DNA of 64,000 nucleotides from Entomortierella parvispora E1425 (Eukaryota; Fungi; Mortierellomycota): positions 496,001-560,000 of the forward strand of contig BQFW01000002.1 of NCBI GenBank assembly GCA_020891255.1, given 5' to 3'. Positions 9,252-32,733 of this stretch are shown one piece after another (position 1 is the first letter of the stretch; each line of letters begins with the position of its first letter). Position numbers and translations under genes: made by a program. The notes beneath the pieces are model-generated. The model did not search any database. It was not told the origin of the DNA and saw nothing but the letters and a program-made list of their open reading frames with translations.

Positions 9252-11424
9252 CTACAATACAAGAGCTGCAGGTTGCTCCGACGAGGATTGCTCTTTTCTC
9301 AGTTTCTGCTCCTCCTCATAGCGCCTCGATGGCTTAATTGGTAGAATGTCTATAGTTCCTCTCTTGGGGGCGAGAGGCAGGAAATTCGCCTGGGGTTGGT
9401 AAGCGGCTCCTTTTTGAAAGGACTTGTCCATCACCGACTGGGGAATCCAGTTGAAGGCGATGTATCGAAGAAGGCGCTCCCAAAGAGTCTATTCATGCCA
9501 CAGGTTGTATTATTAATGTCTTTTTTTTTCCTATTCTCGGTTGATTGCCACTGACTGTGATCATTCTCTTACCTGGCCATGAAGAAAAATAGCATTGGCT
9601 TTGGACGTCTTGAATTGTTTTTTCACATTTTCAAAGCGTTGCTCTTTGAAATCCTCCAAGGCCTCCACAATGGATTCATACTTGAGTGACTTCAAATCGT
9701 AGAGACAGTTCGCCAAAATGACAGAATCTAATAAGGCGACCAGTGTGAATAAAGCGGGACGTTTGACATTGAGAATTGAAAATTGGAGGCGGTCCATATA
9801 TTTTTACCTTGCATGGCACAAACAGCACCTTGCCCGGCGCTGGGAAGGAGCTACATATCAAGAAATGGTGATTGTTGAGGGCATGAGATATATAGACGGA
9901 GAGAAGGAAAGAAATAATTAACATGGAGTTGGAGTAGTTACATCCTACACAAACCCCATTTCCAAGTGCTCCATGTCATACCTTGTGGGCTGCATCACCA
10001 ATAAGCACAGTTCGACCGTGAGTCCACGTTTCAAACAGCTTTTCTTCCCAGAAGACGCGTGAGATATTCTCTTTTGGGGTATGGTCGATAAGGTTTCCGA
10101 GGGTTCCGCCTCCAGGGACGCGGAAGTCCTTCACATCGTTGATCATATCTGCATGAGACTCAGATCCCCATGTCGAGTTACGGAATCTTGTCTTCTCAGC
10201 TTCACCAAGTGTCGCCAGTTGAGAAACAACGACCCAGCAGATGCGATTTTCAGGGACATTGAATTCCGCCCACTATTTTCAGTATAATGGAGGTATTTAC
10301 AGTCAGGGCCTTCTTCCATCACCAAGTGAGGAATGAGGTGAAATTCATAGGTGCTTACCGTGTAATGAGTTCCCTTGCCAATCACTTGAGAGAAAATACT
10401 GTCCTCTCTTGCTACAACAGGATACTTGACAGGATCCATAGGGTCAGTTGTACCGACGAGACAATTGAACCCCTTATTCATATCCTCGGCATCTGAGGGT
10501 GGCAGGACCTTCTTTCTCTCCAACATCTTGTAGAGTGACTGCCTCACACCACTGTAAGCACCGTCAGCTCCCACCAACACATCTCCATGGTATGTGGTAT
10601 TGTCGGCACATCTGATCATGACTCCATCCTTGTTTTGCTCCATAGAGAGAACCTTCTTGCTGAAGTGGATTCTTTCTTTCGGGACCTTTGACAAAAGCAA
10701 ATCGTATAGCTTGGGACGAGAAAAAAGCTGGAACTCGTAGCCGAGACTTCCCATTAGAAGAGATCGACAAAGAGAGAGAGAATATAGGGAGAGGAGATAT
10801 CAGTCCCAAAGTAGAGCGGACCTTCCTCACGGATCAAAAGTCGTATAATCCCTCTTACGCATTCTTCTTGTCCGAGTTTGGCAGCTGGCAAATTACACTC
10901 ATATCGCTGTACATGATAGTAGACTCGGTATGGTTGCTTGGATGAGATATTGCCAGCAGTTCCTCATATAGACCGACCTTTTTTTTTTTTGTATTGTTAG
11001 TGGATGTTATTTACTCGTTCATTGACATGTTCGGGGTCAAGGTGTCGACCCATTTCGATCTTATTTTCTTTTCATTCATTCATTCTTCATTCATCTCACC
11101 TGTTCCATCGAGGCCAGGATGGATCCATTCAGGCTCATCACGCTACCTAGTAGAAAGGATCAATTCGGTGAATCGATGCCCGGAGGAGTTGGATGGAACT
11201 CGAGTTCACTTACCGAGAGGCTTGACCTCCTTGGCTCGCTCATAAATCTCATATGGAATTCCTGCTTTGTCAAGGAGAATGGCAAGATAGAGGCCAGAGA
11301 TACCTGCACCCACGATAATTACATTGGGGTTCTTGCCGTCGCTCGTGGGAGGAAGCTGGGACGGGTACTTGAAGGGAGTGTCGTCAAACTCGTCAACAGG
11401 CTTACTAGGGCGATGAGGATTCAT
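9252..11424 (-). CDS. FAD-dependent monooxygenase (FAD_binding_3, group A type), copy A; 8 exons
   Basis: GAGISG Rossmann motif, GADGAYS (DG motif), TVLIGDAAHK|LLPSAGQGA (GD motif); reading frame intact after splicing. Confidence 0.88.
9728..9807 (-). other. Highly conserved 80-nt intron of monooxygenase copy A (counterparts at 20335-20415, 23435-23515, 26094-26178, 28603-28683)
   Basis: GTAAAAAT...CAATTCTCAATGTCAAACGTCCC...TTTATTCACAC...TTAG between codons Q and D; 68 of 81 aligned positions are identical to the copy E intron by hand alignment. Confidence 0.85.
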
Positions 11425-12017
11425 TGTGAATGAACTAGAATGAGAAAATGTTGGGGAATGAGAAGAAAAGAGAGATGAGGAAGACGGCGAGAGATTGAGC
11501 AAAGGACAGTATGCTCTCTCTGTTTTCTTCTCCGCAACCGCTACAGGTGGACACAGAGTCAACAAAAAGCGAGAAAGTCTTTGGTCGTACAGCACAGCAG
11601 CAAATCACCATTTACCATCATACAGTTTTCACGTTCAAGTGTGCTCTGTAGGAGGAGTCTTGAAGGAAGTTCGCCGCCAACTTGGAGTCGGTGGTTGTCC
11701 AAATCAACAAGCTCATTGCATTGGTGATGAATCTGAAAAACTGGAGGAAAGGAAAGAAGACGCGACGCGAACGCGCCTCGAGAAAACGTACGCTGGTCGG
11801 CTGGGTGGCTTAGGTGCTGCGAGAGAGCATGCAACGAATGCTTGCTGGCATGCTTGCATGTTTCCACAGCGATTAATGTTGTATGCATGATGCCCCCTTC
11901 TCCCGTCTGGATCATCATGTCATCTCTTTTGCGCTTTTGTGCCTCTCTTCTCGACTCAGCCTATAGTTAAACAGGCTGCCAAGTCACTCTATCCTGAGCT
12001 CAAAGGACAGGGCGGCG

Positions 12018-12830
12018 ATGAATGCGGCACTTCGATACCTAGGTCGGTGCGGCTTCAAGTGTGTTTTGAAGAACAGAGATGTCCGTAGCATTCTCCAGTA
12101 CGGTAAGAAGGAGAACATACTTTACCCTATCTCACCCAAAAAGCAAACTGACCTTTTCTCGCTCCATATACTCTAGAGCCACGACTGTACTTTTTTTAAA
12201 TCACGTTGGAGGGCTCAGTGGTCACTGATTTCAACCCCGTCGTTGGCTTTCTGCTGGAAGAACCTTGGGCAATGCTCAATCTTCTGTCAGTTGGTATGGA
12301 TTACACCCTACCATCATCGGGGGCCAACCGTCACCAAGGGCCTGTTTAGTCTCTTGTCAGGACTTCAAGGTACTAGGCGCTGGCATTGATAGCGACTTTA
12401 TCCGAAATCATGGACTTCGACAAACCCAATTCCTGAGGTTCTTCACGCTCTCCCAACGGTTTTCAACCATGAGTTTGATTTTTCAGCTGCCGACAGGATT
12501 ATTTGGTACAGTTTTAAAGGTTGCTCTTTCTGAGGCGTACTGGTCACCTTACGCCAAAGCAGCAAAACAGCAACTACACTGGAGGTTCAGAAACTCTCTC
12601 ATGGAAGATCACATTGCGATACATGGAAGTGATCCCAAGGGTTTTGACCTCTTTTACTTTGAAGTGCCAGTTCCATGGTATGGTCTATCGACTACAGTTC
12701 CGGAGGTATCGCAAGGAAGCGACAAATATTAAGCGTCATGGATCAAAAAGGCAAGGGCGTCTATGGAACCGATATCGAGCGTTGTCCCTTTATGATGCGG
12801 TCCTTCAGGACTGACATTCCTTGCTCAGCT
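12018..12830 (+). pseudogene. Possible degenerate gene or element relic of unknown family
   Basis: ATG at 12018, an intron-like GTAAGA...CTGAC...CTAG segment, then protein-like stretches in several frames broken by stops (155-aa ORF at 12265-12732). No family recognised. Confidence 0.25.
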
Positions 12831-13384
12831 TAATCACTAACGCTGTTATAAGTTGATTTGTCCATTACCAATAGAATTCATCGAGTCAGTTGACTTCCCT
12901 ATCAAGAAAATGAAGAGGCCCTCTTAAAGGGGGATCAGGTGTCCCTTGCTATATGCAAGAACTGAAGGACCGATCTTCGTTATGGTAGGATGCCCCAGAA
13001 GAACAAGATAAACAAATAATTGTGTCAAGGCTATTAACGCTGTCTCTTCATGATGTCCGCAGGGCGCAAGTCACATGCGGTGTGAGAGTTGAGAGCACTC
13101 GAGCAACCACATTATTATTGTTATTGCGCTTCCTCTGGACCTATCCTCGAAGGTTCGATCACAATGCTGTGCAACCATGAACTGCTTTTTGTCTCCCTTT
13201 GCTCAAAATTGCAACTCTTCAACTTTTTCCCTTCTCCCATCTTCCAACCCAACCCATCGTAGACATTCCACCAAATTCTCAAAGCGCCTCTTGTAGAGTT
13301 GTTAATCGCATGTGGCGCTGCTCTTGTCATTTGTTCTCTCATTCACTCTCATATATATCTACCCGCTTTAGTCAACAATAATCG

Positions 13385-16300
13385 ATGGTCTGGTACAAAT
13401 GGTCCCTGCCAGCACAGGATGCTCTTAAACGTGCAAAAAAGGATCTCGAGAAAGCTCGTAACGCCCAGGACAAACGAAAAGCTCTGAGATTCTGCGACGA
13501 TGCCAAAGAAGCTCTGGGAAGGATCAATATCTCGGCAAACATCAACGACCTCAGCCAAATCGTTTCTGCATACCGCGAACATGGCCGAGTTCTTGAAACC
13601 CTGGGACATGACGCCAAGGCTAGAGTAAGCTACGGTAAAGCGGACGAGCTGAGGTAATATGGATACCAACGAGACAACTATACGAAGCAGCAATTATAGC
13701 TCATAATAACACTGGTTTTCTCTCTCTCTCATGTTCTGCCTTTACTGTAAAGCACTGGCCTCGATGCAACAGCCTCCCTCCTTACGGCACCATCTACTCC
13801 TCAGCCGTCGACAGTATTAAGGCCCCAGCAATCTGTCGCTCCCTCTGAGGTAGAGATCTTGGCCAGGTCATTCTCCAGCAGCACCATCGCGGGGCGTGAC
13901 AAAGAAACAGTGTTTGCGACAGTGTTTGCAAAAGACTGTCCCCCATCCACAGCACCGTGCGAATTGCCAAGAGCAGATGAAGATCTCAAGAGCACCCAGC
14001 AGCTCGCCAACTGCCTCGGACTTATCCAAGCGTCACCTCTTCCCACAGACATTCTTGACTCCTTGGTCCCATCAGCCCGCAACTGGCTCGAAATCACGAA
14101 AAATGATATAGACGAGCAAGAACGACTCAGTACGCTGGCCACAGACCTAGTCCGTGCTCTCGCACGGGACGAGCTGAAGGATCAAAAAGTCATAGCCGAG
14201 ATCCTGTGCTTGGCCCCAGCGATGAAGAGAAGAGACTTCCAAGCTGTGCTCAAGTTATTTGTCAATGAAATCAAGGATTCAGCCTTACTGGATGTCCCTG
14301 CATTGGATGGGCTTGCGCAATTGATCCAGAGCGCTTCTCCTGGATATATTGATGCGAATGATCTCGTCCAGATCCTGACTCTTCTTAACATCCGATTGCA
14401 AAGCACGTTTCAAAAATCATCCCATCACGTCTACCAACTGACGTTAACGGTCTCCCGTGTTCTTGATGCAATGGTGGACAGCGAGATTGAAGGTCTAGAT
14501 CGAGTCAATCTTCATGAACCACTCCTCGCGTACTTTGAAGACTTGAAAAAGGCCGAGGACCCTTACCTCGTATTTCAAGCGGTGTATACCTATCAAGCAC
14601 TTTTGAGTGTCCCTGACGATGAAGAGATTTGGCGAGCGGCTTTACGGCGCACAGGAGCGGTCATCAAAGGCGTCAGTGGACTTGCAAGCGCAATCAAAGG
14701 ACTCGACATTACTGCGTTTATTGACGGCTTGCAGTCCATTCAAGGTGGACTCCGGGGTGCAAACCAGTTCTTTGGGATTGTCATGGATGCGTACACAGGC
14801 GTCATGGATCTGAAAGAAGGCGGTCAGGGCTTCCTGGAGTCACTCAAAAGCGGTCTTAGTTTCAAGCAAAAGCGCGCTTGGTATCCAGTCCTGCGCGCCG
14901 CCGACGTCTTGGTTCGAAACGGTGAACTGGTCAAGTTCAAAGCGTTAGTCTGGGAAGCACCTTGTCGCCTTGATCAAGCATTTCAATGGGGTCTCTGCCA
15001 ACGTCTCAGGTATTTGGCCGTGGCTCCATATTTGGATGTCGATTCTCAAAAAGACGCTGTGGCGTTCTTGGGCGAGATATACTGCAATGAGCTAGCGTGG
15101 GGCCAGGAACCACTTATCAAGCAGTGCATCCTGGACATTGTTTTGCAATTGGCATCATTACCCGATCGCACTGTTTCAGGTACTTTACGAATTAAGTGGT
15201 GTGCATTGTAGAAGAGATAGGAGCACTTTAGAATTGGCAACTGACCTCGATTTGCTTGATCCATAGGATCGGTGTCCTTCGCTGCTGCAACGCTTCTACA
15301 AGAGCTGAAGAATGATGGCGATAGGTCGAAGCAGGCTCTTTACGAAGCCAGTGTCAAAGTAGGACCTGGCTCTCATCTCTGGAGTATTTCCCAGCCTCTT
15401 CCGGATTCATCCACTGTCCTTCTTGACCGGGTTCAAAACAGAGCTTCCTTTGCGCGCGAGTTACGATTGTATAAACGCCGAAGACAAGAGGAAGCAAAGC
15501 GACACGCGATATACATATCTCCTCAGGCCAAAGCGAGTCGGAAATCACCCGATACTGAGCTCTTTGAATTGGCAGACAAAGTCAACGAGTTTCTGAAAGG
15601 CGAAAGAAAGGCTTTCCTAATCATAGGCGACTCCGGAGCTGGCAAGTCTACATTCAACTTGGAGCTTGAGCTTCAGCTGTGGAAAGATTATGAAAGCGAT
15701 AAGGAGTGGGTCCCGCTATTTGTATCGTTGCCAGAAATTCATGAGCCTGAGCACGATCTTATCCCAAAGCAACTACACAGATTTGGCTTTAAGGACGACC
15801 AGATTCAGGAGCTCAAGGCCCAGAAGAAGTTCATTTTGATATGCGATGGCTATGACGAGTGTCAACGGAGAACCAACCTTTACAGCAGTAATCGGATGAA
15901 CGATCCTAATGAGTGGATCGTCAAGATGATAATCAGCTGCAGAAGCGAATTCCTAGAGCCCGACTATCAACTATACTTCCAGCCCGGAGATCGCAATGAT
16001 AGGACAGGTGCAGTCTACCTTCAGGAAGCTGTGATTGTTCCATTCTCAAGTTCCAAGGTCCAGGACTACATCCAAAGATATGTCGACAAATACGGATCCT
16101 CCAATGACCCAACCTGGAGCATCGACGAATACTGGCGCACGATCCAGAGTATTCCCAACCTTTTAGAACTAGTGACGAATCCTTTTCTTTTGTCGCTGGC
16201 TCTCGATGTTTTGCCAAGCCTGGTGAACCTTCAAGGCCCTATTCCTACCAAAATAGCCAGGGTCACATTGTATGATGAGTTCCTGAAGCATTGGATAGAA

Positions 16301-19141
16301 CGAGGCCAGAAGCGATTGATAGGCAGGAAATTGAGTCCAGAGGATGAGAGGGCCTTTCGAATGCTATCGAGAGACAACTTCTCGCAACGCGCCATTGCAC
16401 TTGTCAAGGAGTTGGCTGTCGCCATGTATTGCCATCAAGAGGGGAGACCTGTGGTCGAGTTTTCTCACTCCAAGGACCAGAGGAACTGGAAGGCAGAGTT
16501 CTTCAGTGATGACTATAGGACAAACCTTCTACGTGAGACAGCTCCCATCGTCTGCAATGGAAACCAGCATCGGTTTATTCACAAATCAGTTCTGGAATAC
16601 GGGCTAGCACGTGCAGTCTTTGAGCCATGGAAAGAAGCAAGTGACGAACAGAGCTTTGTTGATCAATGGAACGGGAACAAAGGATCGGAGCAGGATAACC
16701 CAACAGCAGTGGCTTCTATCCCTGTGTTATTTCGAAAGAGCTTTGTCCAACAGCCATCTATTATTGGCTTCCTGGTCGATCGAGTCTTACAGAGCAAGGA
16801 CTTTGAAAATCAACTTCACGATATTATCCACCTCTCGAAGACGGACCGAGGAGTCAGCAAGGCTGCGGCTAATGCAATCACGATTTTAGTGCGAGCTGGC
16901 ATTCGATTTCATGGAGTCGATCTGAGAGGGATTCGCGTTCCTGGTGCGGACCTGAGCTATGGGCAGTTCGATTCTGCGCAGTTGCAAGGAGCGGATATGA
17001 GTAACACTTTACTCTCCAACATTTGGCTGAGAGAGGCGAATTTGAGCCATGCACAGATGCAAGGGGCGGACTTCGGAGAGTGGCCATTTCTTGCCACAGG
17101 CGGTTACGTGTCTTGTTGCGCCTACTCACCTGCTGTCAAGGAAGCTCCTATCACTAGATTTGCCGTAGGCCTTGCTGATGGCACCTTAACCGTATATGAT
17201 GCCTTGACATGGGACACAGTTTTCTCTGTAACTGAAAGTCTTGCTAGTTTCAATGGTGTGGCCTATTCTCCTTGTGGCGAGAGAATCGCCTCGTTCAGTA
17301 GAGGCAGTAAAGGCACCCCTATTCGCCTGTGGGATGCACAGTCTGGCTCGCCTATACCCATTCCGATTGTCTACGATGGCCTGGTGTCAAGCATAGCGTT
17401 CTCCCCCGATGGCCAATGGATTGTTACAGCCAGCGATGACATGACCATTCGACTCTGGAATGCGCGGACTGGTTCACCCGGGCTTGTTTTCAGAGGCCAT
17501 TCCGATATAGTGTCTTGCGTGGCGTTTTCTCTAGATGGCAAGCAGATCGTCTCTTGCAGCCACGACAAGACGGTTCGGCTATGGGATATCTGGACAAGAG
17601 AGGCTGTTTCTGTCTTTAGCGGCCATGACAGCAAGGTCTCGAGTGTGGCGTATTCTCCTATCGGAAATCAGATTGCGTCCGGTGATTCGCAGGGAACGAT
17701 AAGGCTGTGGGACATCCAAAGTGGCGAAACTCGCCATGTTCTGAAAGGTCATAATGGTCCCATCTCTTGCTTGGCCTATTCCCTCGGAGGTCATCAGGTC
17801 ATTTCGGGTAGTTTAGATTGGACAGTTCGCTTATGGGGCTCCGAGACTGGCGCAGTTGGGCCTGTTCTGAGCGGCCATAAGGGTCCAATTGCCTGTGTAG
17901 CCTCTTCACCAGATGGCCGGCAGATCGCTTCTGGTAGTGGGGACACTAAGGTGCGATTGTGGGATGCACATACTGGGGTGGCCATTTCTAGAGGCCACAC
18001 AAATACCGTTTGGGAAGTGGCACGCTCGCCAAATGGATGTCAGATCGCGTCAGGCGGCGAAGACAACTCTGTTCGACTGTGGGATGCGCAGGCTGGCGTG
18101 CCAGGCCCTGTTTTAATTGGACATACCAATCAAGTTCGACAGGTCATGTATGCACCAAGTGGCAAGCAGATTGCTTCAGGCAGCTGGGATGCCACAGTCC
18201 GACTCTGGGATGCAGGAACAGGAGCACCAGGACCGATCTTGAGCGGCCACAAGGACATGATTATGAGTCTGGCCTATTCGCCCTGTGGCCAATGGATAGC
18301 CGCAGGTAGTACTGATGGGGCCGTGCGGATCTGGGACACACAAACTGGCAAGGAGCGCTATGTTTTAACTGGACACAGATCCTTGGTGACCACCTTGTTC
18401 TTTTCGCGGAGTGGCCAGCAGATCGCTTCAGGGAGCCGAGACAGGACTGTGCGATTGTGGGATGTACAAACTGGTAAACCAGGCCCTATCTACAAGGGCC
18501 ATACTGCGATGATAAAGAGCATTGCCTTCTCGCAGGATGACCAACAGATTGCGTCAGGGAGCGAAGACAGTACTGTCCAGGTCTGGGACACACACACTGG
18601 CAAAGCCAAATTTAGTCTGGAGGGCCAAGACGGCGCGGCGTTGGTCGTGGTTTACTCTCCAAACGGCCTCCATATCGCAGCGGGCAGTTGGAACAGGACC
18701 ATCCGACTCTGGGATGCCCAGACAGGTGAACCTGGTCTGGTTTTAGCTGGCCACAGTGAGTTAATTTGGGCCGTAGAATTCACACCGGACAGCCAGCGGA
18801 TCGCCTCATTCAGTCCCGACAAAACTTTGCGGATTTGGGATGTGACAACAGGGCAGTGTTTGCTGGTCATGGACGATTTCCATGATTCTGTCAGAAGTTT
18901 TGTCTGGGATATTGCTCAGGATGGAATCTGTTTTGTTACTGGCAATGGCGACTTTTCGGTTCAGAAATGGCGGCTGATCGTTGAAAGCGAGACCAAGCAT
19001 CGAGTGCAGCTTGTCTGGAGTTCATCGCAAGATAAGCTTGTCTTGTCAGGAACCTCGTTCCAAGATGTTCAGTCCCTAAGCAAGGCCAACATTCAGCTGA
19101 TAGAGCAACGTGGGGCTCTGAATACTCCAGTGGCGCTTTAA
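13385..19141 (+). CDS. NLR-like STAND protein: helical/ARM-like N-terminus, NACHT, pentapeptide repeats, about 14-15 WD40 repeats; exons 13385-13653, 13753-15179, 15267-19141 (1856 aa)
   Basis: Walker A IGDSGAGKST, Walker B ILICDGYDE, pentapeptide run GVDLRGIRVPGADLSYGQFDSAQLQGADMS, repeated GH...SP.G.QIASGS.D.TVRLWD units. Splice phases checked. Confidence 0.9.
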
Positions 19142-19805
19142 GAGTGAGCTGGCGGCCGAGGTACACATATTTGAAATGAGAAATGAAGACGAGTCTTCAG
19201 TAAATCCAGCAAATACCAAAAGCTATTGATTCATTCTTCCTTAGAGCACAGTCCCCATCTTCATTTTTGCGTGGCCAAAGAGAAAATAAAATAAAATAAA
19301 AACTATCCACCCCATCTCTGAGGATTCCTCGTTCACAATTAGTAGGATCAAGCATCTTACGGAGGCCAAGCAATGTTCGTCTGCTTGTGTACGTCTCTGG
19401 AGATCAATCTTCAGCCGCTTCCCGTCCTTCGTCTGCTACTTGTCCTTCAGAGATATTCCGGGTTGAATTAACAAATCATGTCACGGAGACTGATGAGGTC
19501 ACGGTGTCAGCCAATGCCCCCACCCTCTTCCCCGAAGAACCCAAGTAAGAACACCCAATGAACACTTCAGCTACATGCAAAAGGTCAAATTACCCAATTT
19601 ATTCATATGTTCGAGCTCAGGCATTCAGACTTGAAGGTTTGAGTCTCCAAAAACACCATGACGTAAGAAGCGCGCTCTAAAAAGCAAAAAAAAAAGGCCC
19701 AATATGACGAATGTGGCGCACGGGGTGGTTCGTGCGCAAAAATGTTGCGATCACTCACTCCACCGTTATGTTTTCATGGAAAAACATCTGGACGAAAGGA
19801 GCCCT

Positions 19806-20949
19806 TTAAACCGCCACTGAAGATGTCACCCTGCCCAAGGACGTGTCGTTTGAAGTAGATTGACTCTTAAGGGTCATCTCTTCTCGCTTTTTCCTCTGCT
19901 CTCTTTCATAGCGCTTAGAAGGCTTTTGTAGAAGAATGTCAATTTTGCCTCGTTTTGGGATGGGAGGCAAAAAGGTGACCATTGGTCTATAGGCGGCACC
20001 TTTGCGAATCTCCTTGAGCTTGAGAGACTCAGGAACCCAATTTAACGCTACATGTCGAATGATCCGCTCTTTCAATGTCTATTCATGGAAGGAAAAAAAA
20101 GAAAGACTCCATATTCAGTCAGTCTAGCCCAAAGGCACTGAATGACGCCTGTGCCAGATGTACGCCAACTTCTTCATACTTGACCGTGGAGAACAATCCC
20201 ATTGATCTTACTCCTTCCGTACATCTCAGCAACGTAATGGTAGCGTTGATCTTTGTAATCCAGACACGCTGCTTGGATTGCGTCTCTATCGAGAGATTCC
20301 AGTTCGTACAGGCAGTTCGCCAAGATAACAGCATCTAACAACGCAACCAGTGTGAATAAACATGGGACTTTTTGACATTGAGAATTGGAAATTGGAGGTG
20401 GTCCAGGGATTTTACCTTGGAGAGCGCACACAGCACCCTGTCCAGCACTCGGGAGAAGTTTGTGAGCAGCTATAACCAGTGTATAAATGAAATGCCAACA
20501 GAGTCAGAGAAAGAGAAAATGGCCAAACCTTCACTTCGAAAACATCACAATCATCAATTTCCACAAAAAAAAAAAAAAAAAAAAGGCACCCTACCATCTC
20601 CAATGAGGACTGTCCTTCCGTGCGACCAGGTATTGAAGAGCTTCTCTTCAAGAAAAACCTTGGAGATATTAGCTGCAGGGGTGGCGCTGATCAATTTACC
20701 CAGAGTGCCACCTCCTGGAACTTTGAAGTCTTTGACTTGGTCAATGAACTCGGAATTAGATTCAGAGGTCCATTCCGAGTTACGGAACTTGATTTTTTCA
20801 AAATCGGCAACGGACGCGATCTGCGAAATGATGACCCAGCAGACGCGATTCTCGGACATATTAAACTCTGACCACTACGCAGCCATGAAGAAACAGAGAG
20901 CACATCATTTAGTTTCTTTCTTTCCTTCCTGAAGTTGTGGAAAGCGCGA

Positions 20950-20984
<35 letters not shown>

Positions 20985-21950
20985 TACGCTGAATCTCGTA
21001 CCACGCCCAATGATCTGACTGAAGTTCGAAGTCTGGCTTTTCAGAAATGGATATTGTTCCGGGTCCATTGAATCCGTGGTGCCGACCATCGCCAAGAACC
21101 CGTTGCTCATATCTGTGGTATCCGATGCTGGCAACAGATTCTGTTCTTGAAGAGTCTTGTATAACCCCTGTCTCACACCGCTGTGAGCGCCGTCGGCGCC
21201 AACCAAAATGTCGCCATGGTAAGTGGTACCGTCGGCGCAACGGATCATGACTCCTTCCTTATTCTGGATCATGGACATGACTTTCTTGTTGTAGTGAATC
21301 CTTTCTGCTGGGATCTTGGACAGCAGCAACTGGTGGAACTTTGGACGAGGAAAATTGAAGAAATTGTATCCAAGTCTATTTGTACAAATGAATGGTACAA
21401 CAAGTAATCAGTCTTGGAAGTCATTTTTACCAATGCAAACCATTATCATCGTCATCATCAAATTGCCGCTGGTTCATAAAACTCTTACTCGCTGTCTGTA
21501 CTGGAGTTGTCGAACATGGCAATGACCTCCATGTTTTCATACATGATCTTTGAATTTCCAGCAGGGAAGGAGATGGCCTTGAGCTCATCAAGGAGACCAA
21601 TTTGCTCTATAGCCCCAAGGATGTTAGCGTTCAAGGACATGATGGACCCTATCATTGAGCCAGGAGGGTGGGTGTTAAGGGCGCTGTTGAAGAGAACCGT
21701 TTACTATGATAAGTTGACTTCTACTCCCTTCCATCATACCAAGAGGCTTCACTGTCGAGGCTCTCTCATAGATCTCATATGGGATCCCTGCCTTGTCAAG
21801 AAGGATGGCAAGCAGAAGGCCAGCAAGACCGGCGCCAACGATCATAACGTGCGGGGTCTTTCCATCACTCTTGGGGGGGAGTTGGGATGGGTATTTGACA
21901 GGCGTGTCATCGAACTCGTCAACAGGTTTGCGGGTACGATGGGGATTCAT
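19806..21950 (-). CDS. FAD-dependent monooxygenase, copy B; 7 exons
   Basis: MNPHRTRKPVDEFDD start, GAGLAG, GADGAHS, IGD|AAHKLLPSAGQGA; frame intact. Confidence 0.88.
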
Positions 21951-22153
21951 TGTGAATAAGCTGGGAGGATTGAGGGCTATAAGGGGGTAAGAAAAGACTG
22001 GTGGAAAGGAAACAAAGGGCAGAACGAAGGGTGGGTTGCTTCCTTTTCTTCTTCTCCTTCTTTTTTTTTTTATTTTTTTTATATGAGTTTATATCGCAAC
22101 TGCATCGCTTGAACACAAAGACACAAATGAGAGCAGAACGTAAAGTAGCTGCC

Positions 22154-22171
22154 GGTCACACAGCACAGCAG
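22154..22171 (-). promoter_or_regulatory. Shared upstream motif of the monooxygenase paralogs (plus strand GGTCGCACAGCACAGCA-like)
   Basis: Variants at 11583, 22154, 25130, 27726, 30295 and 32907, each about 110-220 bp upstream of a paralog ATG. Confidence 0.55.
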
Positions 22172-22910
22172 TGGACCATTGCTTTCAGTTTAGCCGCTCA
22201 AGCCAAAGGTGCTTGGGAACTTGATATGGGATGCTTGATACTCTTTGGAACGGACAGTTGCCTAAGACTTCAAGTGCGCCGCATCTGTGAAGAATCAGAG
22301 GGCTTATAACTGAGATGCAGGAAGAGGAAAACGCGACACGAACGCGCCGAACCGTTGGTGGCCATGAACGCCATTCGGGTCATGGTGTGTGATGATTGGT
22401 GACCTCTCAATACGCTTGCCAGAGCACCGTTGAAGCTCAATTGTTGGTGACCAGAGAAAGATTGAGTCTCAGCTGCGTTTGTCCTTGTTCTCCAGTGCCC
22501 CATGGCCAGCTAATAAAGAATGGGTGGATGAACCTCCCTCTTGTACTGTACATGTGCAGTTACCTCCACTCCATAGCCCTTACCAAGAATCATCCTCCTG
22601 TGTGAGGGTTCCAGTCCTGCCGCCCAGCGGCACTGAACCTCATGTGCTGGACCATGAGTTTTCCTCTGATAGACTATTGGGAACTGGGGTTGACTCAAGA
22701 GGGAGCTCTGTCGAGAAACCACCCTCCATTACTCTTCCTTCTTCCTTAAAGTCCAATAACATACGGGGAGGCGGTATGAGCAACTTCTGATGTTGAGTCT
22801 GCCGGATAATCACCATCTGCGCACTTAGAGGAGCCTGACTCAAAATTCCTCAGTATCCTCGGTTTTTATTTTTTTCATCTTGAAGACATGGCTACTCAAG
22901 GAGGAACCAC

Positions 22911-24965
22911 TTAAACAGCCGCCACAGGCAACGTAGCGACTGGTGAAGTGTCCTCCACACGGGATTGGATCTTGAGCGCCTCCTCTTCTTGCTTCTTTTT
23001 TTGCTCTCTTTCGTACCTCTCTGAAGGCTTTTGCGGGAGAAGATCTATCTTGCCTCGTTTGGGGATGGGGGGCAAAAAGGTGACCATTGGTCTGTAGGCG
23101 GCACCTTTGCGAATCTCCTTGAGCTTGAGAGACTCGGGGATCCAGTTAAGGACCACATGCCGAATGATCCTCTCTTTCAACGTCTAGTCGTGGAGCAAAG
23201 ACACAAAGAAAGTTAGAGTATAATCTCCAGTCAATCCAGAGGACGGCTCCAACTCCCTACTCTCCTCGACTTTCCATACTTGGCCGTGGAGAACAATTCC
23301 ATTGATCTTGCTCCTTCCGTACATCTCTGAAACATAGTGGTAACGCTGCTCTTTGTAGTCCAGACACGCGGAGTGGATTGCCTCTCTGTCAAGAGATTCC
23401 AGGCCATACAGGCAGTTCGCCAGGATAACAGCATCTAATAAGGTAACCCGTGTGAATAAACATGGGACGTTTGACATTGAGAATTGAGAATTGGATGAGA
23501 TCCATGTATTTTTACCTTGCAGAGCGCACACCGCACCTTGTCCAGCACTCGGGAGAAGATTGTGGGCAGCTATAGACAGTCAGTGAAAATGGAGCGTTAG
23601 CTTGCTTGAAGATGATGCACACGGTCAAAAAAAAAAAAAAAAAAACACCCTACCATCTCCAATCAAGACTGTCCTTCCGTGCGACCAGGTATTGAAGAGC
23701 TTCTCCTCAAGAAAAACCTTGGAGATGTTAGCTTCAGGCGTGGCGCTGATCAAGTTACCAAGCGTGCCGCCTCCAGGGACTTTGCAATTTTTGACCTGGT
23801 CAATCAGCTCGGTGTTGGATTCAGGACCCCATTCCGAGTTGGGGAACTTTTTGTTTTCGTGCTCTTCAACTGAGTTAATCTGAGAGATGATCACCCAACA
23901 GACACGATTTTCGGGCACGTTCAACTCGGACCACTGAGCCGACGCAGGGTATGAGGTAGCAATAAAACAAGATATTAGCATTTCTGAAGACAAAACGCCG
24001 CAGCAAGTATGAAAATAGAACTCACGCTGAAGCTTGTGCCGCGTTCAATGACCTGACTGAAGTTTGAGGTCTTGCTCTTCAGAAATGGATATTGTTCAGG
24101 GTCCAGCGGGTCAGTAGTACCAACCATCGCCAAAAACCCGCTACTTGGCTCTATGGTATCGTGCGCCGGGAGTAGATTCTGTTCTTGCAGGGTCTTATAC
24201 AATTCCTGTCTCACAGCGCTGTGCGCGCCGTCGGCGCCGACCAAAATATCACCGTGATAGGAAGTGCCGTCGGCACAATGGATCATGACCCCTCCATTGT
24301 TCTGGACTGTGGAAACAACCTTCTTGTTGTAATGAATCTTTTCCGCTGGGACCTTGGACAAGAGCATTTCATGGAACTTCGGACGAGGAAAATTCAAAAA
24401 GTCATATCCAATCCTATTTGCACATGAGCAGGGCAATCAGACTCCATCCTCTTTTGGAGTGAAAAAAAAATGAATACCGCGATAACCATCCGTTCAGAAA
24501 ATATCTTACTCGCTGTCTGTGCTAGAGTTGTCAAACGTGGCAATGACTTCCATGTTTTCATACATGATCTTTGTATTTCCAGCAGGAAACGAGATGGCCT
24601 TCAGCTCATCGAGGAGACCAATCTGGTCTATGGCCCCAAGAATGTTGGCGTTCAACGACAAAATGGACCCTATCATCAGGCCAAGGGAAGGGAGTTAAGG
24701 ACGACGCCGGGAAGAGACGACACACTCCAAAAGTGACCTCTGCTTGATCTTTCATACCAAGAGGTCTGACTATCGAGGCTCTCTCATAGATTTCGTATGA
24801 GATCCCGGCCTTGTCGAGAAGAATGGCAAGAAGCAGTCCAGCGAGACCGGCACCGATAATGACCACGCGTGGGGTCTTGTCATCACTGTTCTTGGGCGAC
24901 TGGGATGAGTGCTTGAAAGGTGAGTTGTCAAAGCCGTCATTAGAGGTGTGGGAATTAGGATCCAT
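22911..24965 (-). CDS. FAD-dependent monooxygenase, copy C; 7 exons
   Basis: GAGLAG, GADGAHS, IGD|AAHNLLPSAGQGA; frame intact; divergent N-terminus MDPNSHTSND. Confidence 0.87.
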
Positions 24966-25567
24966 TGCGAATGAGACCGGTGGATTGAGGGTTGATATGG
25001 AGGGTACGAGAGAGAGAGAGAGTGAAAAAAAGAGAGAAGAAATTGATGGGACGATTCTTTTTCTTCTTTTTTCTTTCTCGCAATTGCACTGTGTGAACAC
25101 AAGAGAGAGCAATGGATAAAATAGCTGCTGGTCGCACAGCACAGCAGTAGACCATCGTTTTCAGTTTAGTCGCTCAAGAGAGAGGCGCTTGGGAACTTGA
25201 CATGGGATGTTCGTTGCTATTTGGGACAGGCAGTTGTCTAAGGCTTCCAGTGCACCGCATCTATGAAGAATCAGAGGGCTGATGACTGAGCTGCAGGAAG
25301 AGGAAAACGCGACACGAACGCGCCGCCATGAACGCCACTCAGGTCAATATCTGTGGCCTCTCGTTTTTTTCTGAGCACCATTGAGCTCTATTGTTTGTGA
25401 CCAAAAAAAATTGAATCCCAGCTGCGGCTTGGCCAGAATGGGCAATGAACAATGCTTCCGCTTCGTCGGCCATACCAGGAATGTAGGATCCAGGAGGGAT
25501 GCCTGAAGTTCTCAGAACTCCCAATTCGTACTTTATTGTTCTCATTCTAAAGCCACGGATGAGGCAT

Positions 25568-27617
25568 TTAAACAACTACCACAGGCGAGTTAGCGGTGAG
25601 TGATTGGTCTTCCGCATTGTATTGGCCCTTGAGTGCCTCCTCATCCTGTTTCTTTTTTTGTTCTCTCTCGTATCGCGCAGATGGCTTTTGAGGGAGAAGG
25701 TCAATCTGTCCTCTTTTGGGGATGGAGGGCAAAAAGGTGACCATCGGTCTATAAGCAGCGCCTCTACGAATCTCCTTCTGCTTAACAGACTCAGGAGCCC
25801 ACTTCAGCGCTACATGTCGTATGATACGCTCTTTCAATGTCTAACCATAGGAACAAAAGGCGGATGTAGGTTTGAAGTTAGCCCTTTACATGATATGAAT
25901 CTACTGGTCTCCTTCTCGCTCTGACTGCTTCTCCATACCTGGCCATAGAGAATGGTTGCATTGATCCTGCTCTTCCCATACATCTCCGCGACGTGATGGT
26001 ATCGTTGCTCCTTAAAGTCTAGACACGCTGCATGGATCGCGTCTCTATCGAGAGATTCCAGGTCATACAGGCAGTTCGCCAAGATAACAGCATCTAGTAA
26101 GGCAACCAGTATGAATAAATATGGGACTGACGTTTGACACTGAGAATTGGAAATCCGGAGTGCTCCATGTATTTTTACCTTGCAGTGCACACACCGCACC
26201 TTGTCCAGCACTTGGGAGTAGCTTGTGGGCGGCTACCAATGGAAAACAGGAAAAGCAATGTTAGATCGATAGAACTTAGGAGGTATTGGTCATACCCAAT
26301 ACGAAGGAACCCTACCATCTCCAATGAGGACAGTGCGACCATGCGACCAGGTCTCAAACAGCTTTTCTTCCAAAAAGACCCTGGAAATGTTGGCGTCGGG
26401 CGTGGCGTTGATCAAGTTGCCCAAGGTACCACATCCAGGAACTCTGAAATCCTTGACCTTGTCAATGAACTCGGGATTGGATTCAGGACCCCATTCCGAG
26501 TTGCGAAACTTGATTTTTTCGAATTCTGCAATCGATGCAATCTGAGAGACAACCACCCAGCACACACGATTCTCGGGCATGTTGAACTCAGACCACTAAG
26601 TAGATTCAATACAAAAGATAAAAATGGAGTCAGCCCATGTCATGTCTTTCAATGGTTCTAAGTGAAGTTAGGTGGAAAAAAAAATATACTTGCATTAAAG
26701 CTTGTGCCAGGCCCAATGACTTGGTTGAATGTTGAACCCTTGTTCTTAACAAATGGGTACTGTTCAGGATCCAAGGGGTCCGTTGTACCGACCATTGCCA
26801 GATAGCCTTTGCTCAGCTCTGCTGCATCTGATGCTGGTAGGAGGTCCTTTTCTTGCAAGGTCTTATATAGCCCCTGTCTGACACCACTGTGTGCACCGTC
26901 AGCGCCGACCAGGATATCGCCATGGTAGGTGGTGCCATCAGCACAACGGATCATGACCCCATCCTTGTTCTCTATCATGGACATGACTTTCTTGTTATAG
27001 TGAATCTTCTCCGCTGGGACCTTGGACAGGAGTAGCTGATGAAACTTTGGACGAGCAAAATTGAAATACTCATAGCCAATTCTAGTTACGTACCACAGCG
27101 GACGTTCAGTTTTCGGTGGTTTCGAATTAACATCATCGTGACATTCCAAAAAAATACCTACTCGCCGTTCTTGTCCACATTGCCAAAGGAGGCAGTGACC
27201 TTCATGTTATCGTACATGATGTTTACTTTATCGCCAGGAAACGAGATGGCCTTGAGCTCATCCAGGAGGCCAATTTGCTCGATGGCCCCAAGGATGTTAG
27301 CGTTCAGGGACATGATGGATCCTAATGTTGGACCAAAAGGTGAGCGTTGAGGACCATGTTGAAAAGAACCGTACAGTAAAAAAGTTGACCTGCACTCCTA
27401 TCATACCAAGAGGCCTCACTGTTGAAGCTCTTTCATAGATCTCATATGGGATCCCGGCTTTGTCAAGGAGAATGGCAAGCAGAAGGCCAGCAAGTCCAGC
27501 TCCGACAATCATCACGTGCGGAGTCTTGCCATCACTCTTGAGGGGAAGCTGGGATGGGTGTTTGATAGGAGAGTCGTCAAACTCGTCAACAGGTTTGCGA
27601 GCACGATGCGGGTTCAT
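25568..27617 (-). CDS. FAD-dependent monooxygenase, copy D; 7 exons, third intron GC-AG
   Basis: Same motifs as the other copies; frame is intact only if the GCAAGT donor at 26693 is used. Confidence 0.85.
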
Positions 27618-28061
27618 GCTGAGTTCACAAGATGGAGAATGTTGGAGATGAGCAGAAAAAAGATGATGGAACGAATGAGATGCTGGAATATCTGGATACA
27701 AAAAAAAAAAAATGAATGGTCCGATGGTCGCACAACAGCGGCGGTTGTTCGACCTGCTCAAGGCTCTCGCAACATGAGGTGCCGATTGCGAGATCCCATT
27801 CGTGTTGAATCCAGAAGAGGGATCGAGTCTTGAGACTCGATGCAGGTGGCAGACACACGGCTAAACACGCTGATCTTGAACAGCCAGGAGGTCAGATCTT
27901 GGTGATCAATGACCTTTCGCAGCCTCAGGACGAACAAGTGGCTGCCAGCATTCATGGCCAGTTGAGCATAGAAAGAGCTTGGACTCCCTTCAAGAGCGTT
28001 GCGTGCTCTACACTTCAACGGTGCAATATTGATTCTTAATAAATAGCTAATAGTTTAATGA

Positions 28062-30149
28062 TCAAACAGCTAGCACAGGAGTTGCTTGAGTAGATGATGC
28101 GGCCTCTGTTGCGGTATGATTCTTGAGGGCCTCTTCTTTCTTTTTTTGCTCTCTCTCATATCGAGCTGATGGTTTTTGGGGAAGAAGATCTATGTTGCCT
28201 CTTTTTGGGATGGGGGGCAAAAAAGTGACCATCGGCCTGTAGGCTGCGCCTTTGCGAATCTCCTTGAGTTTGAGAGACTCGGGGACCCAGTTCAGGATTA
28301 CATGTCGAATGATCCTCTCCATAAGTGTCTAATTATGAGAACATCGATCAAAGGTGAGAGTACAATCTTCAGAGGTCAACTCAAAGGACATCTTACGACC
28401 CTGATCCAAAGGTCCATCTGGTGCACTCCTCCATTTAACTTTCATACCTGACCGTGGAGAATGACTGCAATAAGGTTGCTTTTGCCGTACATCTCAGCAA
28501 CATAGTGGTAACGCTGCTCTTTGTAGTCCAGACAGGCGGAGTGGATCGCGTCTCTATCGAGAGATTCCAGGTCATACAGGCAGTTCGCCAGGATAACAGC
28601 ATCTAATAAGGGAACAAGTGTGAATAAACATGGGACGTTTGACATTGAGAGTTGGAAATTGGATGAGGTCTGTGTATTTTTACCTTGCAGTGCGCACACC
28701 GCACCTTGTCCAGCACTCGGGAGCATCTTGTGGGCAGCTATAGACAGTCAATGCAAGTGGAGCGTCAGCTTACTTGAAGATGATGGGCACGGTCAAAAAA
28801 AAAAAGGTCCCTATACCGTCTCCAATGAGGACTGTCCTTCCATGCGACCAAGTCTCGAAGAGCTTCTCTTCCAAAAAGACCCTGGAGATGTTGGCTGCAG
28901 GGGTGGCGTTGATCAAGTTGCCAAGCGTACCACCACCTGGGACTTTGAAGTCTTTGACCTGGTCAATGAACTCGGAGTTGGATTCAGGACCCCATTCCGA
29001 GTTGCGGAACTTGATCTTCTCGAATTCCGCAACTGAGGCAATCTGAGAAATGATCACCCAGCAAATCCGGTTCTCGGGCATGTTGAACTCGGTCCACTGA
29101 GTAGACGCAAAGAAGGAGACAGAAAAAAAAAAGGAAAAAAAAGTTAAGTTTAGTTCATGATGTCTCTGAGGATGCGGGGACACCCATAGGATATCAAACT
29201 CACACTGAAGCTGGTGCCACGTCCAATAACTTGACTCAAAGCAGAGACCTGGTTCTTCAAAAATGGATATTGTTCAGGGTCCAGTGGGTCCGTGGTACCG
29301 ACCAGCGCCAAGAAACCTTTGCTCATATCTGTGGCATCCGATGCTGGCAAGAGGTCCTGTTCTTGCAAGGACTTGTATAACCCCTGTCTGACACCACTGT
29401 GTGCACCGTCAGCGCCGACCAAGATATCGCCATGGTAGGTGGTGCCATCGGCACAACGGATCATGACCCCTTCCTTGTTCTGGATCATGGACATGACCTT
29501 TTTGCTATAGTGAATCCTTTCTGCTGGGATCTTGGACAGGAGTAATTGATGGAACTTTGGTCGAGCGAAATTCAAAAAGTCATATCCAATTCTACATTCA
29601 TATACGAGCACCACGACAAAAGGTCAGTTTTGGACCTCTGGTGCACAAAGATACATCAAGGAAACTGCCATTCTTTCAAAGTCTTACTCGCTGCTCGTGT
29701 TGTTATTGTTGGTCGTGGCAATGACCTTCATGTCCTCATACATGACGTTTGAGTCACCTGCAGGGAACGAGATAGCCTTGAGCTCATCTAGAAGGCCTAT
29801 TTGCTCTATAGCCCCAAGGATGTTGGCCGATAGCGACATGATGGAACCTATCATCGCACAGATGGGAAACGATCAATTTAGGCACCCTGTTTTACAAGTG
29901 AATGAGGTGCAAGTTCCTCTGCTCTATTTCCGTCTTACCAAGAGGCTTGACGCTGGACGCCCGCTCAAAGATCTTATGCGGGATTCCGGCTTTGTCAAGG
30001 AGGATGGCAAGTAACAGGCCAGCAAGGCCGGCTCCGACAATCATCACGTGTGGATTCTTGCCATCACTCTTGGGGGGAAGTTGGGATGGGTGTTTGATAG
30101 GAGAGTCGTCAAACTCGTCAACAGGTTTGCGAGCACGATGAGGGTTCAT
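28062..30149 (-). CDS. FAD-dependent monooxygenase, copy E; 7 exons
   Basis: GAGLAG, GADGAHS, IGD|AAHKMLPSAGQGA; frame intact. Confidence 0.88.
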
Positions 30150-30753: not shown

Positions 30754-32733
30754 CTAGATTGTTGCTGCAGGAGGGCTCTGCTCAGCCAGTGCTTGTTCTT
30801 TGAGAGTCTTCCTTTTCAGCTCTTGCTCTTTCTCATAACGCTTCGAAGGCTTCTGAGGAAGAACCGGTGCAGTCCCTTTTTTGGGAGTAAGAGGCAAGAA
30901 GCTGACTTGGGGGCGGTATTCGGCGGCCTTTGCAAAGTTCTTCATCTGCATGGACTCTGGAACCCAGTTGATGGCGATGTATCGGAAACAACGCTCTAAT
31001 AGCGTCTTTTTTTTTTTTTTTTTTTTTTTTTTCCCCAGAAAAGGGCTCGGTGGTTAGTACCTGCCCGTTATTTGTTGAGAAGCATGGCGGAAGAAGGATA
31101 GTCTCCATATCTGTGCAGTACGTACCTGGCCATTGAGAATCATTGCATTGAGTTTGCTTTGATCGAACTGTGTCTTGACCGGACCATACCGCTGCTTCTT
31201 GTAGTCGTCCAGAGCAGCTTCAATATGAGGTTGCGAGAGGGACTCCAAATCGTAGAGGCAGTTTGCCAAGATAATACTATCCTCCACTGCACAGACTGCA
31301 CCTTGTCCAGCGCTGGGGAGAAGTTTGTGAGCGGCTACTCGGACCAGAAAGGTGGGTTATTACCACTGAAAGAGAAAACGAGAACTTTTCTCATGGATGA
31401 TGAGGAACCTCTTCTTACCATCGCCAATAAGGACGGTCCGACCGTAGTTCCAAGTATCGAACAGCTTTTCTTCAAGATAGACACGCGAGATGCCGTCAGA
31501 CGGTGTCAAATCGATCAAGTTTCCAATGGTACCACAGCCTGGTACCTTGAAATCTCTAACTTGCGAAATGAACTGGTCATTGATTTCAGGTGCCCATTCC
31601 GAATTGCGGAACTTCATCCTCTCGGATTCTTCCAAAGAGGCAAATTGGTTGACGACCACCCAGCAGACGCGTTTCTCTGCAATGTTGAGCTCAGACCACT
31701 AGTGGGCACATGACAAGATAGAATTAGGGTTACAATCAAGTTTGTCAAGATTGAACAGAAGAGTTTTTTTTTTCTCTCAATGAACTTGTACCGTGTATCG
31801 AGTGCCTCTGCCGATTATTTGGCTGAAGATACCAATTTCCTTTTCCACCAAAGGGTACTTTTCAGGATCCAATGGGGACGTGGTGCCAACCAAGCAGGTG
31901 AAGCCCTTTGACATCTCTTTGGCATCGGATGAAGGTAAAACCCCCTTCTCTTTCAGAGTCCTAAAGAGGTTGTTTCTGATGGCGCTGTGGGCGCCATCTG
32001 CACCGCATAGGATATCGCCATGGTAGGTAGTGCCATCGGCGCAACGGATCATAACACCTTCCTTGTTCTGCAAGGCCGAAAGCACCTTTTTGCTGTAGTG
32101 AATCTTTTCAGCTGGGACCTTGGAGAGGAGCAACTCGTAGAGTTTAGGTCGACAAAACAACAACATATCGTAGCCAAAACTTGTGAAAGTGGGCCAAAGA
32201 TTAGAAAGACTTTTCTTGTTTGCCTTTTTGTTCAACGGCTGATGAACGCATGTAAATATGATCTGACTTACACATTGTTGGTATTACCAGCTGGCAACTC
32301 AATGGCGAGCTCGAGGTCTTCATACAAGAGTTGGGCACCTCCTTGTGGGAGAGAAATGGCCTTCAGCTCTTCGTACAGACCCACTTGCTCCAGCGCGGGC
32401 ATGACATTGACACTTAGTGTTAGAATGGAACCTGAGTATCAACAAATGAGGCTTTTTTTTAGAGTGGACTCGACACAATCTTGACTTTACACCTTCACCA
32501 ATCAAAGAGACAGACAACTAACCCAAAGGCTTGACAACAGGAGCACGCTCGTAGATCTCATACGAGATCCCGGCCTTGTCAAGAAGGATGGCAAGGAAAA
32601 GGCCACCGATGCCGGCCCCAACGATCATAACATGTGGGGTCTTGCCATCGCTTTTGGGTGGAAGTTGAGACGGGAGCTTGACAGGTGTGTCGTCAAACTC
32701 GTTGACAGGCTTGTAGGCACGGTGGGGATTCAT
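30754..32733 (-). CDS. FAD-dependent monooxygenase, copy F; 6 exons (lacks the conserved intron)
   Basis: GAGIGG, GADGAHS, IGD|AAHKLLPSAGQGAVCAVEDSIILANCL read without a break at the site where A-E carry an intron. Confidence 0.88.

Follow-up and report, generated by a model that had tools for sequence, protein, structure and literature searches.

The way in which new spliceosomal introns originate and multiply has been an open question for a long time, and the locus described here raises it in a pointed form: why should an intron resemble its counterparts in paralogous genes more closely than the surrounding exons resemble each other? The locus lies in Entomortierella parvispora E1425 (assembly GCA_020891255.1, contig BQFW01000002.1, positions 496,001 to 560,000; this whole stretch of 64,000 nucleotides (nt) is called the window). 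The window contains six minus-strand paralogs of a flavin adenine dinucleotide (FAD)-dependent monooxygenase, named A to F, with intact open reading frames (ORFs) of 496-506 amino acids (aa). Five of them, A to E, share an intron at the same codon, to which we gave the name intron e. Judged from the sequences of these genes and their relatives, intron e is probably young and lineage-specific, and its copies would be alike through a recent shared template and not through selective freezing.

Intron e is a GT-AG intron (GTAAAA...TAG) in phase 1, which splits the Asp codon (G/AT) in the motif GQGAVCA[LM]Q/D (the slash marks the splice site here and below). Its copies lie on the minus strand at positions 9728-9807 in A (80 nt, GTAAAA...TTAG), 20335-20415 in B, 23435-23515 in C and 28603-28683 in E (81 nt each), and 26094-26178 in D (85 nt with a 4-nt insertion, the most diverged copy of the window). 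The homologous site of F (31280-31281, minus strand, GGAG/ATAGT) is empty, with the exon running uninterrupted between 31281 and 31280. An earlier reading of the window, made from its letters alone (the sequence-only reading), had placed the five introns at these same coordinates and F without one; all five proved to be exact, each stretch representing one whole intron.

Identity between the intron e copies was 79-89% in all ten pairs of A-E. For A and E, the hand estimate of about 84% (68/81) given earlier was reproduced on realignment (69/82, 84%), and the A copy is 80-87% identical to those of B-E. The six other homologous introns reached only 41-60%, compared with a shuffle baseline of 47-50% (±3%), apart from some pairs within B-E that lay higher, for example C and E with 78% in intron d. 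As the sequence-only reading had stated, the other introns of A do not align to those of B-E, their identity being that of shuffled sequence. Identity at fourfold degenerate sites was 27-32% between A and B-E, i.e., saturated, and 50-64% within B-E. In A the flanks are saturated up to both intron edges, with matches at two of ten fourfold sites upstream and at 25-35% of third positions downstream. Across the 64-kb window, the core 21-mer of intron e occurs only in the five introns, with 0 occurrences expected by chance, and neither a motif nor a blastn-short search of the window yielded additional copies of the intron.

Distribution of intron e and the gene tree

Relatives of the six genes were gathered by a peptide-seeded scan of metagenome contigs and by look-ups of fragment proteins, with many of the contigs belonging to one related fungus, whose orthologous fourfold divergence (K) from the window is 0.84-0.85. 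This fungus contains an ortholog of A (L013; 83-86% aa identity, with the same A-type intron d) as well as an ortholog of D (L006; 89% aa identity), and the site is without intron e in both. In about 20 copies from this fungus, including these two, a single exon (209 or 198 nt) takes the place of the two that border the intron elsewhere, so that the motif GQGAVCA[LM]QD[AS] reads through. The site is also uninterrupted in a member of the gene clade from Gryganskiella cystojenkinii (L045), in two E. chlamydospora paralogs, in L002 and in all more distant relatives examined. No intron at aa 364 in phase 1 was present in any sampled gene from outside E. parvispora or in any outgroup.

Within E. 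parvispora, a search with the full-length protein identified two further loci (L042 and L043) with at least eight additional carriers of the intron at the same codon, which brings the number to at least 13 carriers in three genomic regions. In five of the eight sequenced ones (L042_g1, g3, g4 and g5 as well as L043_g5), intron e is 76-90% identical to the window copies, and the L043_g5 copy is the nearest one to that of A (89%). The remaining three, L043_g2-g4, contain a much more diverged homologue at the same site. Its homology is supported by a local score of 32, compared with 13.5 ± 2.4 for shuffled sequences and a maximum of 21 among 88 real introns other than e. In these three copies the old acceptor is mutated (TCATTAT) and an AG located 14-19 nt further on is used. 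The three genes are arranged in tandem (L043:4031-12253), are 93-98% identical in protein and have near-identical introns, which looks like a very recent triplication within E. parvispora as far as the sequences tell.

Four E. parvispora paralogs do not contain intron e, namely F, L042_g2, L043_g1 and L044_g1. Among the sources sampled, the intron was found in the E. parvispora assembly alone. A profile of the 13 copies, built on sequence alone, gave no other match in 288 kb (window plus loci). A search of the JGI metagenomes with the core pattern of intron e yielded 0 matches, the pattern being a strict one with 24 specified bases, and the intron-containing ORF used as a protein query yielded no match.

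The spliced gene models were obtained with a protein-guided aligner followed by a hand check. Splicing of intron e is suggested by the fact that, although its copies differ by indels, each of the 13 carriers has an intact ORF of 488-506 aa once it is removed. The copies of B, C and E (81 nt) contain no in-frame stop, and their retention would add 27 residues within the FAD-binding GQG...D motif. In the A copy the first in-frame stop is the TAG at the 3′ splice site; retention of the D copy would shift the frame. A retained coding insert was considered and rejected, since indels shift the frame among copies, the A copy ends in TAG and the D copy measures 85 nt.

The gene tree does not follow the distribution of the intron. 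A tree constrained to unite A-E in one clade is worse by 251 log-likelihood units and is rejected (approximately unbiased (AU) test, p = 5e-63), while B-E as one clade is not rejected (AU p = 0.07). A tree of 21 rows requires at least three changes of intron e state. In the maximum likelihood tree of 28 rows the carriers occupy seven separate places: L043_g5 (sister to L044_g1, without intron), L043_g2-g4, A (sister to its intron-less ortholog L013), L042_g5, L042_g4, a group of B, C, E and L042_g3, and D (sister to its intron-less ortholog L006). Parsimony on this tree, counted by hand, gives seven gains or about 13 losses. On the evidence of these trees, intron e cannot have been inherited vertically after one gain. 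F groups with genes of other species that have no intron e, and most likely it never had the intron rather than having lost it.

Age, flanking tracts and rival explanations

Over all carrier pairs, the identity of intron e is flat at 76-89%, whereas that of the host genes ranges from 51 to 85% in protein and from 26 to 64% at fourfold sites, and that of the other introns from 48 to 64%. The Jukes-Cantor distance between the copies (0.12-0.21) is small compared with the orthologous fourfold K of 0.84-0.85, and the A copy is no further from those of B-E than these are from each other. Intron and hosts thus differ in apparent age. The sequence-only reading had described the intron as more conserved than its exons; the excess identity it had seen is real, and the explanation by conservation gives way to one in which the intron would be younger than the exons.

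The rate of change within the intron is not uniform. A Poisson test on the five window copies had made the rates look uniform, but with ten copies a 3-fold regional difference was observed and the claim of uniformity was withdrawn. Per-site divergence from the consensus of the ten copies is 16% in columns 9-31, 5% in the centre and 4% in the last 26 nt (Fisher p = 3e-6). The fast 5′ third is 75% identical in gene pairs with saturated synonymous sites and 68% in younger gene pairs. Because the identity of this fast third is independent of the age of the host genes, it argues for a recent common template and not for selection on other positions. The slow 3′ two-thirds, including CCAATTCTCAATGTCAAAC and TTTATTCACAC, also comprise the parts kept in the old copy of L043_g2-g4, and are under some constraint. 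From its sequence, this slow part probably holds the branch point (TTTATTCACAC) and the 3′ splice region, and the central CCAATTCTCAATGTCAAAC is perhaps a motif relevant for splicing.

Footprints of recombination are visible next to several of the copies. In six of six B-E pairs, third-position identity is 70-95% in the 20-codon window that includes the intron, compared with about 60% gene-wide, which is near the identity of the intron itself; by its pattern, this elevated window is best read as a short co-converted tract. For D and E, 29 of 30 third positions match between codons -10 and +20 relative to the intron, with 9-10 matches per ten positions. L042_g5, which branches deeply in the tree, agrees with D/E at 8-10 of ten third positions in codons -20 to +10, at a gene-wide level of 50%, and one upstream stretch of it is identical to D at 41 of 42 nt. 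The sequence-only reading had regarded a long tract of synonymous sites as conserved as the intron as a sign of ordinary recent conversion; no such tract exists around A, and in B-E it covers only about 30 codons. Apart from this, D and E are conversion mosaics along their length, in which third-position identity reaches 85-95% for codons 0-40 and 160-200 but only 45-65% over the remaining codons, and the D protein is closest to the foreign ortholog L006 despite this mosaic.

The site itself was compared as well. All carriers read CAAG/AT, whereas most foreign copies of the B-E type read CAGG/AT; the ortholog of A already has CAAG/AT. Among the non-carriers, F has GGAG/AT and L044_g1 also differs from CAAG/AT, while L042_g2 and L043_g1 have CAAG/AT. 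If anything, the CAA codon in front of the intron would be native to the lineage of A and derived in B-E, which gives a weak hint that the intron may have come to the B-E group from a donor resembling A. The residues around the intron in A (Q as in B-E before it, DS as in F after it) had been proposed to be a mosaic left by conversion, an idea that fails, as the intron-less ortholog of A also reads AMQDSV. Of the earlier proposal of a transfer between paralogs, the spread itself is borne out by at least 13 carriers in three regions of one species, with converted flanks in several recipients; the direction given for it, into A from B-E, did not follow from the data.

We consider it fairly probable, reasoning from these sequence comparisons, that a lineage-specific intron spread among the paralogs by paralogous gene conversion. 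A spliceosomal intron would have been gained in the lineage of E. parvispora or of a very close relative, and would then have been copied to the same codon of many FAD-monooxygenase paralogs by inter-paralog recombination, either gene conversion or a process of the synthesis-dependent strand annealing (SDSA) type, the “intron transfer” of the literature. After copying, its 5′ third would have decayed about three times faster than the 3′ two-thirds. With regard to the first gain, nothing significantly similar to intron e turned up among other introns, in its flanks or in the remaining available sequence, and a comparison aimed at an origin from other introns or flanking exons gave a best local score of 22 at a mean shuffle maximum of 20.9. 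A string common to intron e and intron d of B (TTTAT.ACACTGGTT) was within chance and was discarded.

Several observations weigh against this explanation. The rate heterogeneity within the intron is real (16% versus 4-5% per site), which implies some constraint, and the older, diverged homologue in L043_g2-g4 indicates a longer residence in the genome. In A, moreover, third-position identity is 37-43% beside an intron that is 80-87% identical, with no converted flank; identity of the flank to B-E extends no further than 6 nt on the upstream and 2 nt on the downstream side, and the flank matches the intron-less ortholog instead. Because A is without a converted flank, at least one transfer was intron-sized. 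Such a clean transfer is awkward for ordinary homologous conversion between genes that are only about 65% identical. It would be in line with a break at the site that was mended by an SDSA-type process, and it also leaves room for an intron-specific route.

The constraint on the 3′ part bears on the idea, put forward in the sequence-only reading, that an ancient intron has been held near-constant by purifying selection on a functional RNA or a splicing-control element. Beyond the 3-4 times slower change of the 3′ two-thirds with CCAATTCTCAATGTCAAAC and TTTATTCACAC and their preservation in L043_g2-g4, this idea can draw on the non-consensus 5′ splice site GTAAAA, which is kept in all copies; together with the slow central CCAATTCTCAATGTCAAAC, it gives a circumstantial likeness to Mer1-type regulated introns with a splicing enhancer. 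The structural analyses gave no support to it: an Rfam scan of 9-33 kb of the window produced no match at E<=10 overlapping the introns, the RNAalifold consensus fold has an energy of -0.44 kcal/mol with 0 compensatory pairs and no covariation, and single-sequence folds of the five copies gave z-scores of -0.5 to +1.3, i.e., no stable structure. With no ortholog from any other sampled taxon containing the intron, the idea is largely refuted; the A copy being no further from B-E than these from each other, and the 75% identity of the variable 5′ third between genes with saturated synonymous sites, speak against it as well, and we regard it as very improbable. An old intron might also have been homogenised by ongoing conversion in E. 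parvispora and look young only for this reason, its absence from the related fungus and from F being due to conversion towards the intron-less state or to several precise losses. The diverged homologue of L043_g2-g4 implies a longer history than the ten similar copies would, and conversion, which is active in the arrays as seen in the D/E mosaics, can spread absence as easily as presence. This history would, however, take about 13 losses instead of 7 gains, and intron e alone would need to have disappeared, with introns d and f preserved, from each gene sampled in four other taxa or sources; with no outgroup intron at the position either, we hold it to be quite unlikely.

The exactly intron-sized transfer involving A would fit an intron that is itself mobile towards a single target site, a spliceosomal intron “homing” within one gene family, either through reverse splicing into paralog transcripts with subsequent reverse transcription and recombination, or through repair of a site-specific break at ...TGCAAG/AT.... 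Carriers in at least three genomic regions with host proteins as low as 51-54% identical would fit such mobility, as would the CAAG/AT common to all carriers and missing from F, L044_g1 and most foreign copies, and the slow central motif and 3′ part even in the old L043_g2-g4 copy. On the other hand, the co-converted flanks in B-E and L042_g5 show that recombination at the DNA level moved the intron, and two paralogs with CAAG/AT (L042_g2 and L043_g1) are without it. Introns d and f next to it, at distances of 43-54 nt and 155 nt, are still in place, whereas events mediated by complementary DNA usually remove such neighbours. Neither target site duplications (TSDs) nor terminal inverted repeats (TIRs) were found, the ends GTAAAAAT and CCTTATTAG not being inverted repeats and only AG being common with the flank; a stable fold and a copy at any other site in the 288 kb are lacking as well. 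Mobility of this kind appears unlikely, and a self-propagating, “paralog-homing” spliceosomal intron that spreads by itself through reverse splicing or break-induced copying at ...TGCAAG/AT... is somewhat more doubtful still. With the evidence on both sides taken together, spread by paralogous gene conversion, including a DNA-level event that would lie behind the clean transfer involving A, is the explanation we favor.

Gene cluster and its other introns

The assignment of A-F to their family relies on the Pfam domain FAD_binding_3, which was matched on relatives of these genes. Gene A (9252-11424, minus strand, as for all six) encodes an intact spliced ORF of 496 aa for a FAD_binding_3-type monooxygenase and contains seven introns. 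Genes B (19806-21950), C (22911-24965), D (25568-27617) and E (28062-30149) form a tandem run, with 504-506 aa and six introns each. Gene F (30754-32733; 499 aa, five introns) adjoins this run. The proteins of A, F and the B-E group are about 58-64% identical to one another, those inside B-E 75-83%. Between A and B there is a gap of about 8 kb (11425-19805) with a long plus-strand ORF at 15272-19141. In the related fungus, the ortholog of A directly follows genes of the B-E type in the same orientation (L034:2406-7152, L035:2187-6933), and this difference in spacing points to either an insertion in the window or a deletion in the relative. In an array of the same relative (L031:8825-9855), a transposase of the Tc1/mariner type (DDE_3, HTH_Tnp_Tc3_2) follows a divergent fourth paralog, whose model contains an in-frame stop.

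Three other introns differ between the paralogs. Intron c of D (26596-26693, minus strand) is of the GC-AG type (GCAAGT...TTAG), where the five other paralogs have GT, and the ORF of D is intact only with the GC donor. Gene A contains an extra phase-0 intron at aa 86 (10978-11099, minus strand) which is found in none of B-F; a distant E. parvispora paralog, L044_g1, has a phase-0 intron at aa 87 (L044:10439-10543), the same position as the extra intron of A. This intron may be ancestral and have been lost in B-F afterwards. Intron d occupies positions 9851-9981 in A, compared with 20470-20594 in B, 23570-23653 in C, 26233-26315 in D, 28738-28816 in E and 31335-31418 in F. The version of A sits 11 nt downstream of that of B-F and is in phase 0 instead of phase 1. 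In distant relatives and in E. parvispora L043_g2-g4, both versions are present around a micro-exon of 11 nt (L016:363-585, L043:5387-5583). Because of this state with both introns, the shift is explained by differential loss and not by intron sliding, A and its ortholog L013 having lost the upstream intron and B-F the downstream one.

Comparison with known systems

What intron e offers is one datable intron which at least 13 paralogs of one species contain at the same codon and which no sampled ortholog elsewhere contains. As recombination footprints accompany it in some recipients only, the copies form a natural series for studying frequency, reach and tract length of intron jumps between paralogs. 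The case also calls for caution in that an intron position common to paralogs need not be ancestral, which bears on the dating of introns by paralog positions, and in that a sequence which exceeds its exons in apparent conservation may owe this simply to a younger age.

Intron e is probably an unusually clear, multi-copy case of intron transfer between paralogs, a process which Hankeln and co-workers reportedly described in 1997 for the globin genes of Chironomus. Intron transfer is listed as one of seven mechanisms of intron gain, with three events counted by 2012 (Yenerall & Zhou, 2012, PMC3443670). Common to these events and to intron e are a novel intron that some paralogs contain at one and the same position while the other paralogs and the outgroups do not, and spread by inter-paralog recombination; as a mechanism, intron transfer accounts for the spread and not for the first origin. 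The features that define it, i.e., same position and phase, derived presence, carriers that do not form a clade, excess identity and converted flanks, are all found here, the last of them in B-E and L042_g5 and not in A. The scale is different, with at least 13 carriers in three regions instead of single events, with recipients as low as about 52% identical in protein, and with a transfer between A and B-E that left no detectable converted flank.

Introner-like elements (ILEs), known from Dothideomycetes reportedly through work of van der Burgt in 2012, and the introners of algae and other eukaryotes resemble intron e in being near-identical, recently multiplied spliceosomal introns, several in one genome, that decay after insertion. 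They are scattered over hundreds of unrelated genes, exceed regular introns in length and have a stable fold or TSDs and TIRs, whereas all 13 sequenced copies of intron e lie at one homologous codon of one family, measure 78-85 nt compared with 67-131 nt for neighboring introns, have no fold, TSD or TIR, and are flanked by converted exon sequence in several cases. Parallel occupation of the same position has been discussed for ILEs of Dothideomycetes (Collemare, 2015, PMC4457414). A survey found fungal introners only in Pezizomycotina, using a pipeline that discards similar introns in paralogous genes (Gozashti et al., 2022, PMC9860276). If it were true that intron e is a paralog-homing intron, it would represent a new class of introners, invisible to screens that discard similar introns of paralogs.

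The concerted evolution of tandem gene families is the third system to be compared. It is similar with respect to the patchy homogenised tracts in neighboring genes (D/E and B/C) and to their raised synonymous identity. The unit transferred here is different, being a newly gained intron, sometimes with less than 10 nt of flank, that also reached non-adjacent and unlinked paralogs.

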